The notes below the pieces were generated by a model. That model ran no database searches and was not told where the DNA came from. It worked only from the letters and a program-made list of their open reading frames with translations. From Ophelia neglecta (lineage: Eukaryota), in NCBI GenBank assembly GCA_965285935.1, contig OZ260666.1:49290001-49354000 (forward strand): a stretch of DNA of 64,000 nt. Reading direction: 5' to 3'. This document shows, piece by piece, positions 7,782-18,600 of the stretch (the stretch's first letter is position 1; the number at the start of each line of letters is the position of its first letter). The position numbers were made by a program, and so were the translations under genes.

Positions 7782-8320
7782 CCATCAGCGCCAGGTCCTC
7801 AGAATGTCCATTAACCCGATCTGACAACATCAGGAACCGTCATTAACAGGCCCCCAGAGTTTTATTTAACACGTCCAACAACTTCCGGAACCGCCAGCGA
7901 CAGGCCCACGGAGTCTCTTTTTATGGCTCACGGAGTGTCCGTTAACCCGGTTTGAAAACCCCAAGAACCGTCAGCGGCAGGACCACAGAATGTCGGTTAA
8001 CTCGGTCCGACAAAATCAGCAGCTGCCGGCGGCCGGCCCACAGCGTGTCCGAAACTCGGCCCTACACCATTAGAAGCCTTCAGCGGCCGGCCCACAGAAT
8101 GTCTGTTAACCCGGTCCGCCAAGACCAGGAACCGTCAGCGACAGGCCCACAGTGTCCGTTAACCCGGTCCGACAACTTTAAGAACTTCAGCGACAGTTCT
8201 ACACTGGCCCATTAACCTTGTCTGAAAACACCAGGAACCGTGCAGGCCCACGCTGCAGAATGTGGCCAGACATCTCCAGTGACTGTCAGCGACAGGCCTA
8301 TAGTGTCCATCAACCGTGAA
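7782..8320. repeat. Degenerate GC-rich minisatellite, about 55-bp unit, about 10 copies
   Basis: Recurrent unit approximating CCGTCAGCGACAGGCCCACAGAGTGTCCGTTAACCCGGTCCGACAACATCAGGAA, with substitutions and indels. Confidence 0.85.
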
Positions 8321-8664: not shown

Positions 8665-11600
8665 ATGAGTTGTAATATGACCAATACTGAGAGACGTGAC
8701 TCTAACACGAGCACGCGGGTAATTCTGCTAACTGTTGTGATACTTCTTGTCATTTCGGGGAACGTAATACTCTATCTTCGTCATAGGCAAAAGGTGCGTA
8801 AGTGGTCACCCAAAAATTGGCTGCTCAGCCAATTAGCTCTAATCGGGTTTTTGAATGGATCGATTATCACGGGTGCATACACTATTTTTTCACTTAAAGG
8901 TAAGCCGGAATGTTTGTTCTATCACATATAATAATATTATGCATTTTACACATCTTGCACTGCTGATATTTTTGTGTTATGTTAAGAACTTTATGTAATC
9001 AAGATCACAAAGACCCAAAAATGCATCATATTTCAGTTTCCAATTGGCTCCCCTTTGTCTGTTTTGCATTGAGAATTATATGGCGAAGCAACATTTTGTT
9101 ATTGCAAATAGGTCTGTGTACTAAGTAAAAAAAAAAGGCTTGTATATATCGAGTTTTAGGGCTATTTAAATAACAGTAGGCCAAGGATATCATGCCCCGC
9201 GAAGATATCAGTCGGTGATTGGAGGCCTGATATTTGCCTTTGTATGAGGCCGCGCGAGCATAGATCGCCTCTATGTGAATGTAGAAAAAAACTGGGTTCT
9301 AAAAAGTGCTTAGTATCATTGAGGTGCAGCCATTGAATTCCAAAAACCGTGGTGTCCAGTCTGACTGGGGGCCGCCATGGATTTACAGGAAGTGCGACAT
9401 ACACGGGATACGCCTAGAGCTTTTTTAATGGATTCTGCGTAAATGACGCACGCCTTAGTTATTCTCAGAATATTAGTCTCCCTTCTTATGCAAAGGTACA
9501 GCTCTTGTCTTCTTTAAACTAGAATGTAATAGAAGGTACAACTTTTAAGCAAATCCGCGACCGCTTTAACCATATATTAGGCCCCGCCTTTCAAACATCT
9601 GACATGAATGCCTTCAAGGCCTGCAGACTTCTTAATAATAAACAACAGTAATTCTTTAAGATTCTTTAATTTAAAATCTAAAACGATCAGACAAGACATT
9701 TTTGTATATAATAACCTAGCAAAAAAGCAAAACAAATTACAATCACGACAAGCATGTAGATTGCAAACTGCAAAGTTGCAATACCACAAAACAAAGCACG
9801 AAATCTAATTGACACCTGTTTTCAAACAAAAGTAATATATACTTCGTCCAAGTCGGACCTGAGACCTATGTTATCAGAATGATTACGCTTATTCCTATAT
9901 TGTAGGCCTTACATCGTTTCACGCTTCCGTAATAATAAATTTATTTCCATATTGTTAAACTACAGGCTCTTTGTCATGACATTTTAGCTAATAGCTTTCG
10001 ATAGAGTTTGTATGTTGAATCCGTTTCAGTGCCACATTGAATTTGTACTCTTTTACGTCAAGCATTGTTTGAATATTCTCTCCTATGTACATATCCTCAT
10101 GAAGCCGGTCTGATTGGGAGTGAACAAATTTCTGGCAGAACAAGTTTTATGCTGTGAGCTTGCAGTGGCTTTTGCCGCGAGCTTGTAGTAACAGCAAGGG
10201 AGAGATATTGGACGCCAGTTTATCAAATAAAGCGTGTATTTATCCTTTTTCGGAAGAACGAATATTACATCTTGGCATTGCGTGATCTCTAAGTTAGCGG
10301 TAGCCAAGCTGCTGCATATGGCTTTAACTAACCACGGTCCTATATCTGACCAAATATGTTTTAAAAATCACATGGCAATCCACCAATTCCTTGAGATTTG
10401 TCATTCTTGGTTATATCATGAAAGAGAAAAGCGCTTTAAAGTTTTCCTCTGATTTCTATCCTCCGATTTCCCCTCATCGTTCGTTCTAAATATCCGCCCA
10501 GGTATATTTTGCGTTGATTTACCGAAAGGGAAAATCCTTCCACCCAAGACCTATTGTTTTCACATCATTTCATGACCCTGTATTTCTTCAGCAACATGCT
10601 TTATCCAAAATATAATATTTTCCTCCCAAAGATTCCAGTTAAAATGAGGAGAAATTTGCATCTTATTTCTACTTATCCAGGTGTAAAATCTCTTATGTTC
10701 AGGAAATTTTATGAAAGTTTATTCTTATGTGCAATGGTCATTTTTACGCTCTCTATCAACCAGGGTGTGCAAGTAAGTGCGTCGATTGCTTGGTTTTACA
10801 GTAAAACACTTTTCGTAAATATTACTAAATGCACTATGAAGGTGAGAGAATGATGTTTGAGTATCATCAGTTTCAAGTATAGCGTTCCTGTTTATTATCT
10901 GAAGGGCATAACATAATAATGGCTAATCTATTAAAAAATCTGCTCCTAAGTACATTTTCTTTAGGCTCAGCATTGTTCGGAACACCAATAAAAATACAGG
11001 AAATTGGTCATATCTGTGCCAGGTATAATATGGTTGATATTACTAATATAGACGAATATGTTATCAATCAAGGAAGCTAAGCAGGAAGTTACCCACGGGA
11101 CTTATAACAGGTTGCTTATATCAGGTAACATAGAATAGAACGAAACGACATTCCAGAATTCACAAGTGGATTGAAAGGAATCTGAATTAAACAAGTTTAC
11201 ATTAAATTCTCCCATTATATAACACGTTTTTTCTCCGTATTAAGTTTAAAGGAACATTTGACTTCATTATACTGCCTGAGATCTGTGTCAGCAGGCCGAT
11301 ATATCACCCCAAAAGATTGCTTAGCTGGTGGCCACTCCCTTCGATAAAGAGACTTTCAATAGTCTTATCATAAACAATTTTCTCTCATAGTATTCTATTT
11401 TTTTCCTGTATAAACATAGACACGACGCCACCAAAAATATTATTTCTATAATTATGCACAGCAGTGTATTCTGGAAGACCGTTGCTGTTGATATTAAAAT
11501 CATTAAACCAGCTTTCAGTGAAACCAAATAATGTAAAATCAAAATTCAATAATTGTATGTTAGGTTTGGAAACGTGACAAATTCCTAGGTGCACTTCTCA

Positions 11601-14600
11601 TACAAGTATGAATTAATGATAAATGATTGTTCATGTTGACATCAATATTTTTGACAGCCTGATTTAATGATTTTTCGAACTATCAGTCACATATTTTAGC
11701 CATAGAATGTGTTGATAAATAAATAAGAAAATTAATATCAGGTTCCAAATCATGCAGAGGAGAGTTTTCGATTTCATTGAAATCAAATGGTTCAAACAAC
11801 ATGCTCTCAAGCTTTGTGAAAGTCATACGTTCGTTGGGCTACATAGAAGACATTGTCGGCATTCTCCCGCATAACCATATCTAATGCTACCTGTCAAAAT
11901 CCTCCTAAATTGATCATGACGGTCTACCTCCCATAAGATTCTTCTCTGATTCCTGTTTTGGGATTTTAGAAATATTTCAATACGTTGAGGGTCATTTATG
12001 AAGACGGGGCAATCCTTTAAAACGTGGTCACCCGTGGTTTATATTTAAACAAAACGAAAATTTGGTGTCACAACACTACCAGAGGTTGTAGGACTTGTAA
12101 CCTAACTGACCCAGAAAATAAAAAATGTTCATGCTCAAAATGGAATCATAATCCTACTTACAAATTATAAGGCAAACATGGCAGGTGTTTAGTGTGTTTC
12201 CCATCATTTGGGGCTTTGTTTATAAATAGCGTTTCGACGGCCCTATTATCAAGCTATAGTTTCCTGCTGAATATAATGTCAAGTTCGTAATAGGCAGAAA
12301 CGACCGCAAGACAGGTTAAAATTTCATATATAATTAAATGGCATTGAATGTAAATATCATATAGGTATGTTTTCCTTCTTAAATATTTTCTATTCAATTT
12401 ATTATCTTCAGGAAAATGCGCTTTTGGAGAGGTGTTCTGCCAGTTATATGGGGTGATCAGTTCCGTTCTTATTAGCATCTGGACTTGGCTACTGACAATA
12501 GCTGCTTTCGAAAGGTACAGTAATACAAAACAACGTCGTTTTAATGAGATGGCAATTCTCTATAGGGACATTAGGAGAAGGTTACGAGAAGTTCTAGAGA
12601 GCGATGCATCATAGGCCCTATATCTCCCACGATAATGCTGGAACTTTGTAACGACCATCTAAGGTTGAATGATACAAAGGCAAATGAAATGTTATCAGTG
12701 CAGAGTAACGTTCTCTTACAACATGGGAGTCGACATCCGGCAGACCAGACGAAATCAGTGACCAAGAATAATCCATTTAGACGGTCCGAAATCCCGAGAA
12801 ACCTTCTGCTGCAGGTCAGCAAATATCAAACCCGAAGTCATATACAGCAAATCAGCTTGGAATGAATTAATAACGAATAAAACGTGTAATTACCCGGCTG
12901 AATTCTAGTTTTACTGACAGTGGCCATTATCCGTTTTTTTTTTAAATAATTCAACCGATTTAGGTCTTAATAATGTTTTTTTGCCATGCATCGATAATTT
13001 AGTAGTTTTACCAAATGGGAGGGTGAGGGGGGGGGGGTTGCAATGGAAGAAAGAACCAGCCGATATTTGTCGAGGAGACAGCTTAGGGTGTTAGGGTGGA
13101 GGTTAAAAAATTTAAGCCCCTCTGTTAAGTTTGAAAAGCTAAATTCGGGCATTTAGCTTGTTAATATTTGTCGATTGTTTCGCATGCCCAAAAACAAGAC
13201 ATTCAAGTGTAACGTACTTATTAAATAAAGTCGTGTTTTGTTGGTTTCATTGCGATATAAAGGGAAATGTTCGAGATTTGAACTAATATAGTGATTTTGA
13301 TACTTGATAATAATAGAAAAAAATGTCCGGGTTGGACAAAACACTTTACTTTATTTGATATAATTTACAGTGAAATAACCGGTCAGGATATTGTTACCTT
13401 TGATATCATTAATGTAATTCTTCACGGGCGGGTAGCCCGTTAGAACCCCTAAAAGGTTATTGATGTTACAAGTGTTTTTGGATAAATAATTACAAGAAAT
13501 GTTTTGTAACGTGTGTGTCACTTCTTTAGTTCATTTGATAGTCTGTAATATTCTAATATGATTTACATAATGTACACAAGTTTGTTTTGTTGTTTTCGTT
13601 GCGATATCAAAGAAATAAGGTGATACTTCTCACGGTGTGGGTGGGGATAGAATGCGGCAATATAAGGTTCAATGCAATGAGCCCCCATACCCACAAATTA
13701 ATTGAAACCTGAAGCTAAAAAGATCATTTTAATATCTGATTATCGTTCAAAATATACAACATCACAGACCATATATGTGTCACAGGAGTGGGGTATCTTG
13801 CCATTGCCCTTGAGTACATTGAAAAATAACGTGCACCTTCAACAGGTAGGGTAATAACCGTACCTTTTTTCTTCAGATTTTTATGGCTGGTTTTACCCTC
13901 GGAACATCCGTCCCTTTTCTCGGAAGTTAATACTCGTATAATGACCTGGAGCTCATATCTTCTCATGATGGTTCTCTACCTAGGACCGATCTATGGATGG
14001 GGGGAATACTCTCACTTCAGAGGTATTCAATCTCTATTTGCTTGGCTGAATGTATATACAATTAAAACTAGGTTATAACAGACTATTATACAGACTATAT
14101 TTGTGAGCTGGAAACCAAACACCACTGTTTACTCTTAGCTTGGTTGCAGCGCGATTATATTGTTTTCTGTTGAGAAAACTGAATGCACTGTAATATAACT
14201 ACCTAATATGTCAGGCCTGGTAATTTCTCTTAGCTCTGAAATGTGATCTTTATGAATTTGAAAAATTGAAATCCTAAAATAACATCCCCAAAAGGTCATG
14301 GAAATCATCTTTCCATTTCATGGAGTTTGCTTCTTTGTACTTACGCAGGTACTATTCATCCAATGAAGAGTGAAACGTGAGATTTAGAATAAGCACTCTG
14401 GTCTTGTTTTATGTCGCAGTTAAATCATTTTTGTAGGCAAGGTCGACATCATTCTTACCATGAGTAATATTACCTCGATTGTGGAGGAGAATACGATGTC
14501 AGTGTCCCTCTTTGGCCTGCAGTTCTACCAAACTTACTTGACTTTATTTGGCCAAGGAAATATTTCAATGGAACGAAACATAAAGGATTTACCAGGTCTT

Positions 14601-15604
14601 GATGGAGTCGTGTTTCGTCGCCCAGCACCTTCAGCTTTTGGAATTGTATACCCGGTTCGCGTGAGTAGTAAGCAGACAATTGATTGCTTATTGGATCATT
14701 ATAAAGCGGAAACGCTCGCAGCTGGATTGAATCACGAGGTAAAGCACATGAACATTCCTGCATTGTTTGGAGTCGCCAATATTCACCTCAACATAGACGT
14801 CGATGTTTCGCAGGTCAGAGAATTTATGAAAGTGCAATTAGTGTACCAAGGTTAGTAGGAATTATAGTCCGGAGATGAATTCATATTTTTCCAGCGATTG
14901 ATAGTTTATTTGCGCGATATTGTCATTATTTTGGCCATTTCTTGCTTATGTAGTTATTGCAATAACCATATTTTATCTTTCATTTTCCATTATTTTCAGA
15001 TTCTGCAATGTGTGGTTTGGATTACACCCCAGTAAACGACAGCATATATTCATTTGTTGCTTTCAGTTGGTTTTGGGCCTTGGTGCTACCGTTCACATTG
15101 ATGTTTTACTTTCACATCCGGTCCTTATTCGGAAGTACATACTCGCAGGAGACGTTCATGGCCGACTCCGCCGCCCAGGTTGACCTCTACATAACTAAAG
15201 TGTTAGCGTGCAGCAGTGTGGCGTCATTTATGTGTGATGTAGCATACTTTTCAGTTAACCTAGCGGCAGGCTTCGGTATTAGCATCTCACAAGAGGCCCA
15301 CTTTGCGGCCCACATGTTATTGTATATTAGTTGGGCTTTGCCCTGGACTATATTTTTGCTGACCTCTAGCGGCTGGGAGTGCTTAGGTTGCTGTGCGTGT
15401 GATTGTATTTGCTGGGGATCGTCGTTTCGATTCACGTCATGTTTACGTCCTTCAGGTACAAGAAATAGTCAAGGGTTCACTGAAACCGGGCAGGAGTTCG
15501 AGGCCAGACATAGACTACTCAGCCAAGTCGGGGGTAGTGTCTCAAACTCGCCCGCTTTAAGTGTCACCTCAGCAATCGTCGAAGAATTGGAAACTATTTT
15601 ATAA
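8665..15604 (+). CDS. Class A (rhodopsin-like) 7TM receptor, opsin-related loops but no Schiff-base lysine; 5 exons, 500 aa with exon 4 or 362 aa without
   Basis: Exons 8665-8899, 12412-12514, 13877-14022, 14437-14850 and 15000-15604, all GT-AG with compatible phases (1,2,1,1) and an open frame. Motifs: TM1 ISGN; ECL1/TM3 GKCAFGEVFCQLYG; ERF at the DRY position; TM4/ECL2 PIYGWGEY...CGLDY; TM5 LVLPFTLMFYF; TM6 and TM7 hydrophobic segments; Cys-rich tail CLGCCACDCIC. AATAAA at 15742. Confidence 0.9.
10040..10300 (-). mobile_element. Decayed L1/Tx1-clade LINE RT fragment in GPCR intron 1
   Basis: Translates to LPKKDK..YLINWRPISL.CCYYKLAAKA, NQTGFM and YIGENIQTMLD, with frameshifts. Confidence 0.8.
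11090..11760 (-). mobile_element. Decayed L2-group (Crack/Daphne-like) LINE AP-endonuclease fragment
   Basis: Translates to DLEPDINFL, FTLFGFTESWF, YR...GGVVSMFI, GVIYRPADTD and YIMGEFNVNL, which are APE-type endonuclease motifs, interrupted by frameshifts. Confidence 0.75.
12600..12850 (+). mobile_element. Possible decayed L2/CR1-group RT C-terminal fragment
   Basis: NDHLRLNDTKANEML and GSRH resemble the N-x-L-x-L-N-x-x-K-T-E segment of L2/CR1 RTs. The match is short and degenerate. Confidence 0.35.
14437..14850 (+). CDS. Symmetric phase 1-1 exon encoding a 138-aa extracellular domain inserted in GPCR ECL2 (possibly SEA/ferredoxin-like fold)
   Basis: Acceptor catttttgtag|GC, donor CAAG|gttagt. 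The exon is 414 nt, stop-free and in frame with both flanking exons, with two N-glycosylation sequons (NIT, NIS). Confidence 0.75.
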
Positions 15605-18600
15605 AGACTGCACACGCTCGTCAAATGTGCTATGGTATTAGCGGTCGTGCTATATCATGAAAAGAACATAAAAACTATAGAACATTTTATTAATAGTTTA
15701 TTGAACCTCTTTTATATAATGAGATGTCAGATTAAAGAAACAATAAAGTTTAAAACGATACGGTAGGATCCCGTCGTCGCCGTACGGCTTTAAAGGACTG
15801 TTCCGAATTTAAAATGTTTCATAAAGAGACGACCGCGGCAGACGAATTAAAAGAGCGAGGCACATCTCTGTATTTTAAAATAATATCAATATATATCACA
15901 AATATATTATAATGATAAGACAGCTATCCCAAAAGAAAGTTGGTTATACATTATACACTTAATAAATGGCTTATATAACATGGTTGACAAGTTAGGCAGA
16001 ATAGAAGTGTATTTAAATTGGTATGACGTGTTTAAAAGAGATGCTAGCAAAAGAAAAGGTAGTGCTCATTTGTGAAACTATTTGCTTTTAACATACAAAA
16101 TGCCTGGAAGAAGCCTTATGACATGTGCGAAAATTCTAATAGTTCCTGTGGGAATGGGGTGGTGTTGGGTGGAGGCAGTTCCTGTGAAGATAATACCATT
16201 GGAAATGCATGGTAGAGGCTTGTATATAGACAACCCGGTGACCTTGATGGGCGGAAACCACCCACACGCATTTTTTAAAATAGCACTATTTAGAAAGTTG
16301 CTTTCGATTCATTAACAATCATATGAAAATGAAACTGTTAATATCTGTTCTTCTCGTGCGTATAAAATATCGGCAAAGGACACGTAGAATTCCAAAGAAA
16401 CATTGGCTTAATTTATAGCTGTTAATACTCTGAGGATATACATGTAGATATTAACTTTTCTATAGTCTGTACCTTTATATGGCAAATAAATTGTTTTATT
16501 CAATCATTATTTTCCTTTTGTTCATTGCACGTTAATAGTTAATACCAAGGTCAAACAGGAATCACTTTCAAAATGATTTTCGGGCTTATCACAAAATGCC
16601 CCAAAATTCCCTCTTTAGGAATGCAGCCTCTCAATAGGACAGACTCCTATTGACTCGTGTTTCGTTGCGCAAAAGTGCTGAGCATCAACTCCTACTTTAG
16701 GGATTATACCTCAACCATTTCCACAAGAATACGATCCTTGTTCGATACATTTAACATCCGTCTCTTACTTATTTCCTATGCTTACACATTACGGCTGCAG
16801 ATCTAAATCAATTCAGGATGTCTTTAATTAGACCATTAAGTAAATCTTGTAAGTTGTATACTTTCTATTACCAAACCATATAAACCATTGGTACATATTT
16901 GTAAAATTAGGCAATGTGCAAAATTGTGTACATTTCCTCTTTATATATATACCGTGAAAGAACATTAGTAGGCAGGTTGCGTTAGATCAAACAAAAAATC
17001 TATAAAAAATATTTTCCATTTTTCGTCGTTAGTTGAATATAATTTAGGCTTCTGTCGCACAGCTTGGGTGAAATATATCTGAGGAGCAAATTTGGTACAT
17101 TAAACAATTTGTGAATAGTGGCAGCTCACGAATACTGATGTGACATAATCTCACTATTCAAACATGATGGAGGATGTTTTTATGCATTTGTCTTACACGA
17201 GGCTAACATTATCTGTCGGCTTTAATACAAATGCTGTGAAGATAGTTGCACATTATAAACTATGGACCATTTTCTAAGGGGACAATATAGGAAGCTAATT
17301 AAGAAATGACAGCAAAAAACAAAACAAAAAAAAAACAATTGTTTGGCGAGGATAACATATGTTGTACTGTTTCTCTTTCATATTCATGTTATTTCGACTA
17401 AGCATATATTTCATTATTTTGTCTAATCAGACTGGTGTGTGCGCGTGATTAGGCGGGGGGGGGGGGAGGTTCTTGTATACAATTTGCATGCGAGGGGTAG
17501 GGGGTTGGGGTCCTTCATATTTTTTTTAACGGGTTTGCAGCTGGAAGTTCGGGAACCATACTTTTGGCATTGGTTAGTGAGATCTAACATACAAGGTACC
17601 CTTAGTTAGGTTAATCTGACCAAAGAAACCTGGTAGGATGGTCTGGAAAAAATAAATCATTCTCGTAACTACCTTGCCTGAAATAACACTATTTCGTATT
17701 ATCGTTAACACACGGTACTTCTACCTAAATTATATTATCATACTGAAAAATCGGGCTGAGTTAACCTTTGGAGTGACTGCGAAAAAAACATGCGCTTTTC
17801 CAGGAAATTTGGTAAGAAACTGACCCTTGATGAAGCACATTTGCTTGAAAAAAAAGCGCCCCACTTGTCAAGCAGATCTAATTTATCAAGATATTACGAT
17901 CATGGAGCTTGTAAGTTTAGATTTGGCTTTTATGACTATATATTTTATTCAGACACTTCACAATGTTTTTTTTTACTTTTTGATTCTCACTTATGTGGGT
18001 TTCGTTTCTCGTTTATTATTATTTCTGTACCTATACCTGTGTGATATAAAAACAAATTTATTATGTGATTTCTCGAGAGCAGTTCAAGTTTAGTTTATAC
18101 TTAATACAGTTCGTATAATACATGATACGTCCTTTCCGTTGCGTTTACAAAAAGTGTTTCGTATTTTGCATAGAGTAACATTATCAAACAATCAGAAAAA
18201 ATATCGAAAAGGCATGTGCTGCCTTAAGAGATTTATTCATCAACAGCAGTCGACGTTTTTAACTCCAAAACCATGCCAAAAATTAACACTGTGTAAGGTT
18301 CATTCGTGTTATTTTTGAGCATCATTAGGTAAATAGACTTCAGTGCTTCGTTTTGGCACGGCATATTTTCATTTTCCCAATCTGTCTTATATTGCATGGA
18401 AATATAAAGAAAGGCACGACAGCTATATGGGCAATGCCAAAAAATTAATAGTTCATGTTTTGTCCAATATGGTTGCAATTCCAATGATAACAGTACATAA
18501 TTTCATTGCAGTTCTATTGGGTCAGTAAACGGGTGTCCCCCACATCATGATCCCTATAGTGGCCTTCAGAAGAGATGGTCTAATGGCAGACAGGCAAATA

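Follow-up and report, generated by a model that had tools for sequence, protein, structure and literature searches.

A candidate extracellular domain encoded by its own exon in the second extracellular loop of an opsin-like receptor of Ophelia neglecta

We analyzed a stretch of 64,000 nucleotides of the genome of Ophelia neglecta (assembly GCA_965285935.1, contig OZ260666.1, positions 49,290,001 to 49,354,000 of the forward strand; referred to as the window, the positions of which are used below unless noted otherwise). The window contains a receptor gene of five exons on the plus strand (8665-15604), of which exon 4 (14437-14850) encodes a 138-residue putative extracellular domain inserted in the second extracellular loop (ECL2). 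The protein belongs to the rhodopsin class but has a domain architecture not described before, which we have so far seen in a single genome and on one additional contig. We consider it probable, at approximately 70%, that exon 4 is a maintained exon of an opsin-like orphan receptor, that it is mostly included constitutively, and that the alpha/beta domain encoded by it sits at the turn of ECL2 and caps the receptor. An earlier, sequence-only reading of the same DNA had regarded exon 4 as a cassette that was brought into the loop by exon shuffling and could be switched by splicing.

The inserted exon and its homologs

Exon 4 comprises 414 bases, begins and ends in phase 1, and contains no stop in its 138 codons, including the split codons. 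The exon is bounded by the acceptor tttttgtag^GC and the donor CAAG^gttagt (carets mark exon boundaries), and two N-glycosylation sequons, NIT (14466-14474) and NIS (14559-14567), are present in its translation. At the base composition of the window, the chance probability of the 143-codon open stretch is approximately 7e-5, and merely 6 open stretches of such length were found in all six frames of the 64 kb. The phases following exons 1-4 are 1, 2, 1, and 1, making exon 4 symmetric, and skipping of the exon leaves the frame intact. The coding sequence amounts to 1503 bases (500 amino acid residues) with exon 4 and 1089 bases (362 residues) without it. The open, phase 1-1 exon with good splice sites and two sequons, as described by the sequence-only reading, was confirmed by reading the sequence and by scripts, and so were the two coding lengths by base count.

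Exon 3 (13877-14022) encodes the second intracellular loop, the fourth transmembrane segment (TM4) with W4.50, and the first half of ECL2 (GPIYGWGEYSHFR), and ends in phase 1 with ...GWGEYSHFR plus one base. Exon 5 (15000-15604; acceptor ttattttcag^AT) resumes with (D)SAMCGLDY, the second half of ECL2 including the disulfide cysteine, and continues through TM5-TM7 and a cysteine-rich stretch to the tail ending with -ETIL and the stop codon TAA (15602-15604). The insert is located nine residues after G-W and, because the exon-5 profile matches bovine rhodopsin (see below), can be placed four residues ahead of the cysteine that forms the ECL2 disulfide. We take this site to be the turn of the ECL2 beta-hairpin from the rhodopsin structure. 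The proposed location in ECL2 is thus borne out by the alignment of exon 5 to rhodopsin C187. Likewise, the form lacking exon 4 does have the 18-residue spacing of the rhodopsin ECL2, as the flanks are of nine residues each, and these 9+9-residue arms are kept in every copy of the gene that we identified.

We searched the 762-Mb genome in six frames with the exon 4 translation, as well as with profiles of exons 3, 4, and 5. The six-frame search recovered a single additional close copy, which is located 24 kb upstream and shows 54% identity over 137 residues and no stop. The locus of this tandem paralog is complete, with all five exons in the same order, and the identities of exons 1-5 to the window gene are 44, 55, 83, 54, and about 55%, respectively, exon 4 being on par with exon 5. 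Its exon 4 ends with CAAG^gcaagt (L005:4518-4523), a GC donor in the usual strong context of such donors. At the DNA level, the two paralogs resemble each other in the exons alone; their introns could not be aligned, and no conserved intron sequence beside exon 4 was found between them. In exon 4, the proportion of nonsynonymous differences (pN) is 0.27 and that of synonymous differences (pS) is 0.78, the latter being saturated, and the ratio of nonsynonymous to synonymous substitution rates (dN/dS) is 0.19 for exon 5 and 0.20 for exon 3. From these values, purifying selection on exon 4 is about as strong as that on the seven-transmembrane (7TM) core. The dN/dS check suggested for the insert, made between the tandem paralogs as pN and pS, thus points to purifying selection, though at saturated synonymous sites.

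A third paralog lies on the minus strand at a distance of 1.43 Mb. At the same position, it possesses a phase 1-1 exon of 136 codons, of which both splice sites are strong, flanked by a TM4 exon ending with ...VYGWGQYSVWR and a last exon beginning with (E)SSTCGIDF..., so that the junctions shared with the window gene can be written as R^G...Q^(D/E)SxxCG(I/L)D(Y/F). The third paralog is 19% identical to the window copy in exon 4, 21-24% in exon 5, 22% in exon 1, and 40% in exon 3. An hhalign comparison of its insert exon with the three close copies (those of the two tandem genes and the contig described below) gave an E value of 1.6e-4 and a probability of 50%, with 57 collinear C-terminal columns. 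In the four-way alignment, the predicted strands and helices are kept in the third paralog, which is devoid of a 20-residue stretch falling in a mostly coil segment of the structure model (residues ~39-60). The intron after its insert exon spans approximately 9.5 kb (G000:C9:50734163-50743753), as opposed to 149 bases in the window gene.

Outside this genome, a phmmer search of 1.84 billion representative proteins retrieved a single match, P0001, a 195-residue open reading frame (ORF; E value of 7e-21) on the 15.6-kb ENA contig ERZ25069296 (L011) of another organism. This contig carries the exons for TM3 and TM4, an open insert exon of 145 codons, and the last exon, of which the order and junctions are as in the window gene; exon 4 is 36-40% identical to the other close copies, among which exon 3 shows 79-83% identity. 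The last exon on ERZ25069296 contains two frameshifts (a GGGG run at L011:10833-10836 and at ~L011:11180-11290), while the insert exon is intact. The frameshifts, together with the "2x" that the contig carries in its name, possibly denoting low coverage, may point to an assembly error. When 5.8 billion proteins were searched with profiles, both searches returned P0001 only, in a length window that excluded full-length annotated receptors; the exon-5 profile yielded nothing from the same proteins but missed the known ORF on L011 as well, and is therefore uninformative.

The profile searches of the genome with exons 3, 4, and 5 detected just three genes of this family, and exon 4 is present in all three of them. 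No family member lacking the insert, and no exon 4 domain outside the receptor family, was found in the 762 Mb. Weak exon-3 profile matches on C2 and C9 (L021-L023) turned out not to be receptors. Thus, the question posed by the sequence-only reading, whether homologs keep the exon, can be answered by an open exon at the same place in two paralogs and on ERZ25069296, the last with frameshifts in its last exon. Judged from these sequences, the domain is old and characterizes a small family of receptors, represented by three of three genes in the genome and the homolog of another organism.

DNA contigs from three runs of one sample, which is possibly the source of the assembly itself, run through the introns, span 12303-15700 without a gap, and show no difference inside exon 4. 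Altogether, the sequence evidence identifies 14437-14850 as a real, constrained coding exon that is neither a chance ORF nor a repeat. The allelic differences seen in the contigs (12473, 12478, 15230, and 15417, corresponding to I=I, I>S, M>L, and G>E, respectively) are confined to exons 2 and 5, and the I>S variant in TM3 is the residue present in the paralog and in the ERZ25069296 copy.

The receptor and the predicted fold of the insert

The receptor was assigned by searches run exon by exon. The profile of exon 5, built from the three paralogs, found bovine rhodopsin (residues 186-272) as the best match in PDB with an E value of 2.7e-6, followed by MCHR1 and SSTR2. The C-G-L-D-Y of exon 5 aligns with rhodopsin S186-C187-G-I-D-Y, and the match continues through TM5 into TM6. 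In Pfam, exon 5 of the third paralog matched 7tm_1 (PF00001) with an E value of 5.5e-6 and 26.5 bits (profile positions 136-253), and that of the tandem paralog with an E value of 1.5e-4, the match to 7tm_1 starting at profile position 136-137. Exon 5 of the window gene alone had no 7tm_1 match, while an ORF reading through exon 2 matched with an E value of 0.0014. The scores of single exons for 7tm_1 are below the whole-protein cut-off of 30.5 bits, as is expected for fragments, and the profile positions are correct. The exon-3 profile matched only squid rhodopsin in PDB (GPIFGWGAYT versus GPIYGWGEYS; E values of 3.7-7), and the exon-2 profile matched TM3 of GPR52 and GPR21 (E values of 0.2-0.4); both matches are weak but positionally right.

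Exon 1 (8665-8899; phase 1 end, AAAG^gtaagc) encodes the initiator methionine, an N-terminus with the sequons NMT and NTS, TM1, and TM2. Exon 2 (12412-12514; phase 2 end) encodes TM3 with the conserved cysteine (FCQLYG) and the E-R of the E-R-F (DRY-type) motif. By eye, two hydrophobic stretches are found in exon 1, one each in exons 2 and 3, and three in exon 5. The KD19 threshold of 1.6 or more is reached by one segment each of exons 1 and 2 and two segments of exon 5, and the peak of TM4 is 1.32. The TM3 cysteine is invariant and precedes E-R-F by 24 residues, a distance that we take to be the same as in rhodopsin; the ECL2 cysteine, aligned to rhodopsin C187, is invariant as well. The rhodopsin profile match, the TM3 and ECL2 cysteines, and E-R-F support the proposal of a class A 7TM receptor. 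On the other hand, the window copy reads SFMCDVAYF and ALPWTIF in place of CWxP in TM6 and NPxxY in TM7, and the TM7 lysine (K296 of bovine rhodopsin) is absent from all three aligned copies (HFAAHMLLYISWALPWTIF and the equivalents in the paralogs). Thus, as far as sequence similarity and the lysine criterion tell, the gene is opsin-like but not an opsin.

Each copy of the inserted domain carries two to five sequons, two of which are invariant among the three close copies, and no copy of exon 4 contains a membrane-like segment (maximum KD19 of 1.06). On the basis of these two features, the domain is assigned to the extracellular side. The single cysteine of the window copy (14685-14687) is invariant in the four copies; it may form an extra disulfide bond to the receptor N-terminus, or serve as a free or dimerizing thiol. 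The N-termini of both tandem paralogs read M-(S/T)-C-N-x-T, with the cysteine of the window gene at 8671-8673.

The AlphaFold2 models from the alignments of three and four sequences agreed in the order beta-alpha-beta-beta-alpha-alpha-beta-alpha, in which beta1 is followed by a long helix and a loop, the beta2-beta3 hairpin by two helices, and beta4 by the last helix. The confidence is medium, with a mean predicted local distance difference test (pLDDT) score of 63 and 64.5 and a predicted template modeling (pTM) score of 0.54 and 0.57. The models suggest that the domain is probably soluble and glycosylated and forms an alpha/beta sandwich with a ferredoxin-like topology. A Foldseek search of the models against PDB found nothing below an E value of 0.1, and the weak rows were all ferredoxin-like proteins. 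In a second structural search with VIA, of which the noise level lies at a Z score of approximately 8, all of the rows for the domain fell below that level: the top row was the TRADD N-domain (Z of 5.5-5.6), and the other rows included the SEA region of TMPRSS6 (Z of 5.2 and 4.3), the membrane-proximal part of SorCS2 (residues 959-1066; Z of 4.6), PCDH15 MAD12 (Z of 3.8-4.4), and the SEA domain of MUC16 (Z of 3.5). The SEA rows were tied with ferredoxin-like proteins that are unrelated.

The sequence searches assigned the domain to no recognizable family. Among Pfam entries, only a chance match to KH (E value of 0.05) was found for the four copies, and the SEA family (PF01390) was absent from all of them (up to an E value of 10 for the window copy and up to 1 for the other three). 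PDB gave nothing to the single sequence, and to the profile only a chance match to a helix of KCNQ5 (E value of 0.14) and no SEA chain. The ESM Atlas returned only hypothetical phage proteins below threshold (score of 0.88). A search of the O. neglecta genome for the SEA family produced no match, but the controls were silent too, making the result uninformative. The G^S(V/I)VV site (here the caret marks the cleavage position) is absent, as the beta2-beta3 turn reads SAFG-IVYPV, SVSG-IVYPV, or SAEG-IVFPV with no Ser, Thr, or Cys after Gly. Of the fold envisaged by the sequence-only reading, the ferredoxin-like alpha/beta order was recovered in the AlphaFold models and the GSVVV motif is absent, whereas the likeness to SEA, with Z scores of 3.5-5.2 below the noise level and no Pfam match, is only a lead and not a result.

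Splicing and origin of the insert

As both splice sites are strong, the introns are short (414 bases on the 5' side and 149 bases on the 3' side), the exon is as large as 414 bases, no intron flank is conserved, and every member of the family has the exon, we infer that exon 4 would be included constitutively, or at least predominantly. These features of the gene make constitutive inclusion more likely than regulated skipping. The alternative, in which splicing switches between a compact 362-residue receptor and a 500-residue receptor with the domain, is rather unlikely. The phase 1-1 symmetry in all four copies, and the exact rhodopsin-like 9+9 spacing of ECL2 that skipping would give in each copy, agree with such a cassette, but the symmetry is needed by any exon residing inside a phase-1 intron and the arms would be needed equally as the stalk of the hairpin; strong sites, short introns, a large exon, and intron sequences that are not conserved around the exon between the paralogs argue against regulation. 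The N-glycosylated alpha/beta domain of approximately 137 soluble residues, matching no recognizable family, would cap the pocket entrance of a receptor that lost the retinal lysine. The domain could be the sensing site for an extracellular ligand or partner, or a built-in lid, and both the hairpin and the disulfide to TM3 would relay its movement to the bundle of helices (TM3-TM5). Several points weigh against this interpretation. The inclusion of exon 4 in messenger RNA is deduced from conservation only, the structure models are of medium confidence and built on three to four sequences, the homology of the third-paralog exon relies on a moderate hhalign score and its position, the ERZ25069296 copy could be a pseudogene or decaying, and the role of the domain, whether cap, sensor, or lid, is hypothetical.

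Concerning the origin, a divergent, non-cleaving SEA-type module, similar to those of mucins, TMPRSS proteins, or protocadherin-15 MAD12 and shuffled from a gene that was lost or became unrecognizable, would be compatible with either way of splicing, but we regard this scenario as unlikely. The predicted topology beta-alpha-beta-beta-alpha-beta and the presence of TMPRSS6, PCDH15 MAD12, SorCS2, and MUC16 SEA among the top structural rows are in its favor, and FRRP...G-IVYPV presumably resembles FRPG-SVVV of MUC1, a likeness that we take as a lead only. Nevertheless, none of the Z scores reached the noise level and the top row was an unrelated protein; Foldseek found nothing below an E value of 0.1; Pfam up to an E value of 10 and the profile search of PDB chains were negative for SEA; the domain occurs in no other gene of the genome; and Ile stands where a nucleophile should follow Gly. 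No donor gene for the domain was found in the 762-Mb genome or among the 1.84 billion representative proteins. Exon shuffling, as claimed by the sequence-only reading, thus gained no supporting evidence, since the domain is found nowhere else in the genome and P0001 is its only match among those proteins. That the ORF of exon 4 stands outside the receptor mRNA, either as a nested gene of its own or as a conserved element that merely happens to read like an exon, is very improbable. Exon 4 is tied to exons 3 and 5 by sequence alone, which would leave room for such an element, but the ORF has neither a 5' start codon nor a signal peptide, all four copies are bounded by AG and GT or GC at the same codon positions in a phase fitting exons 3 and 5, and they occur only inside the genes of this receptor family and always in the same intron. 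Practically negligible is the chance that exon 4 is a transposon fragment, an assembly artifact, or a fortuitous ORF. Mobile DNA does lie nearby, in the form of a reverse-transcriptase fragment in intron 1, but exon 4 has only three copies in the genome, all in the receptor family, without flanking repeats and without a match to Pfam or to transposons, a check that the sequence-only reading had called for; its sequence is confirmed by the contigs of the three DNA runs, and it is under purifying selection. We rejected the repeat or transposon reading on the copy number of three and the lack of flanking repeats.

Some other features of the locus were noted. The cysteine cluster after TM7 (WECLGCCACDCICW; 15374-15415) is likely a palmitoylation patch. 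The tail motif GSVSNSPALSV...LETIL (15530-15601) is kept in the tandem paralog and found in another frame on ERZ25069296; the third paralog ends with -TNL, and the C-termini of the family resemble class I PDZ ligands. The fragment in intron 1 (10086-10367, minus strand; Pfam RVT_1, E value of 1.3e-4) is debris of a decayed retroelement, and a 55-base unit repeated in tandem (4.6 copies with 71% matches) occupies 7925-8175, approximately 500 bases upstream of the start codon.

Comparison with known receptors and implications

The window receptor shares with opsins (bovine and squid rhodopsins) the 18-residue ECL2 frame GW..Y........CG(I/L)DY, the TM3 cysteine, W4.50, and P5.50, but differs from them in having no TM7 lysine, LPWTIF for NPxxY, no CWxP, and a 137-residue domain at the hairpin turn. 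Intron 2 of human RHO presumably lies approximately 5 codons upstream in another phase, and the intron hosting exon 4 is therefore not obviously the opsin one. GPR52 and GPR21, self-activating orphans, show a weak, nonsignificant similarity in TM3 to the window receptor, but the ECL2 of both is short and hosts no additional domain. In GPR52, this loop folds into the pocket as a built-in agonist and is a precedent for ECL2 serving as a functional module. The SEA/MAD12-type ectodomains are similar to the insert in the predicted beta-alpha-beta-beta-alpha-beta order and in being extracellular, glycosylated, and membrane-adjacent, but no sequence or profile match was found, the Z scores are in the noise range, and the insert has no G^S site; moreover, they are stalk modules of single-pass proteins, whereas the domain of the window receptor is inside a 7TM loop.

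Our full-text searches of the literature for a domain in ECL2, among class A receptors or opsins, yielded nothing beyond human C3aR, of which the ECL2 comprises approximately 172 residues, is glycosylated, and takes part in binding the ligand, but is reported to be highly flexible and unresolved by cryo-electron microscopy, and extends after the cysteine (PMC10518620). Both C3aR and the window receptor belong to class A and possess a very long, glycosylated ECL2. In the window receptor, the insert stands before the cysteine at the hairpin turn, has its own exon, and is predicted to fold; no sequence relation between the two was detected by the profile search of PDB. The paper on the lysine-less gluopsins mentions no loop insertion (PMC9368030). 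The statement of the sequence-only reading that no described class A family has such a layout is upheld by these searches, given the flexibility of the C3aR loop and its location behind the cysteine.

Sensing modules of the known class A receptors are N-terminal, as in the LGR receptors and protease-activated receptors, or are short loops, and ECL2 is both a lid and a key element of activation. A folded ectodomain at the tip of ECL2 might have taken over sensing from the lost retinal pocket, or might act as a tethered lid or agonist, with the exon toggling between signalling modes; we hold this scenario to be doubtful. If it is true, the family would represent a new sensor design of G protein-coupled receptors, distinct from N-terminal ectodomains. 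The conserved natural case would show that a whole domain can be tolerated at the hairpin turn, in parallel with the insertions of fusion partners engineered by structural biologists, and would serve as a model of how ECL2 and the disulfide to TM3 couple the motion of an extracellular module to the helix bundle. The gene marks a lineage-restricted, lysine-less relative of opsins that is an orphan as to its ligand.

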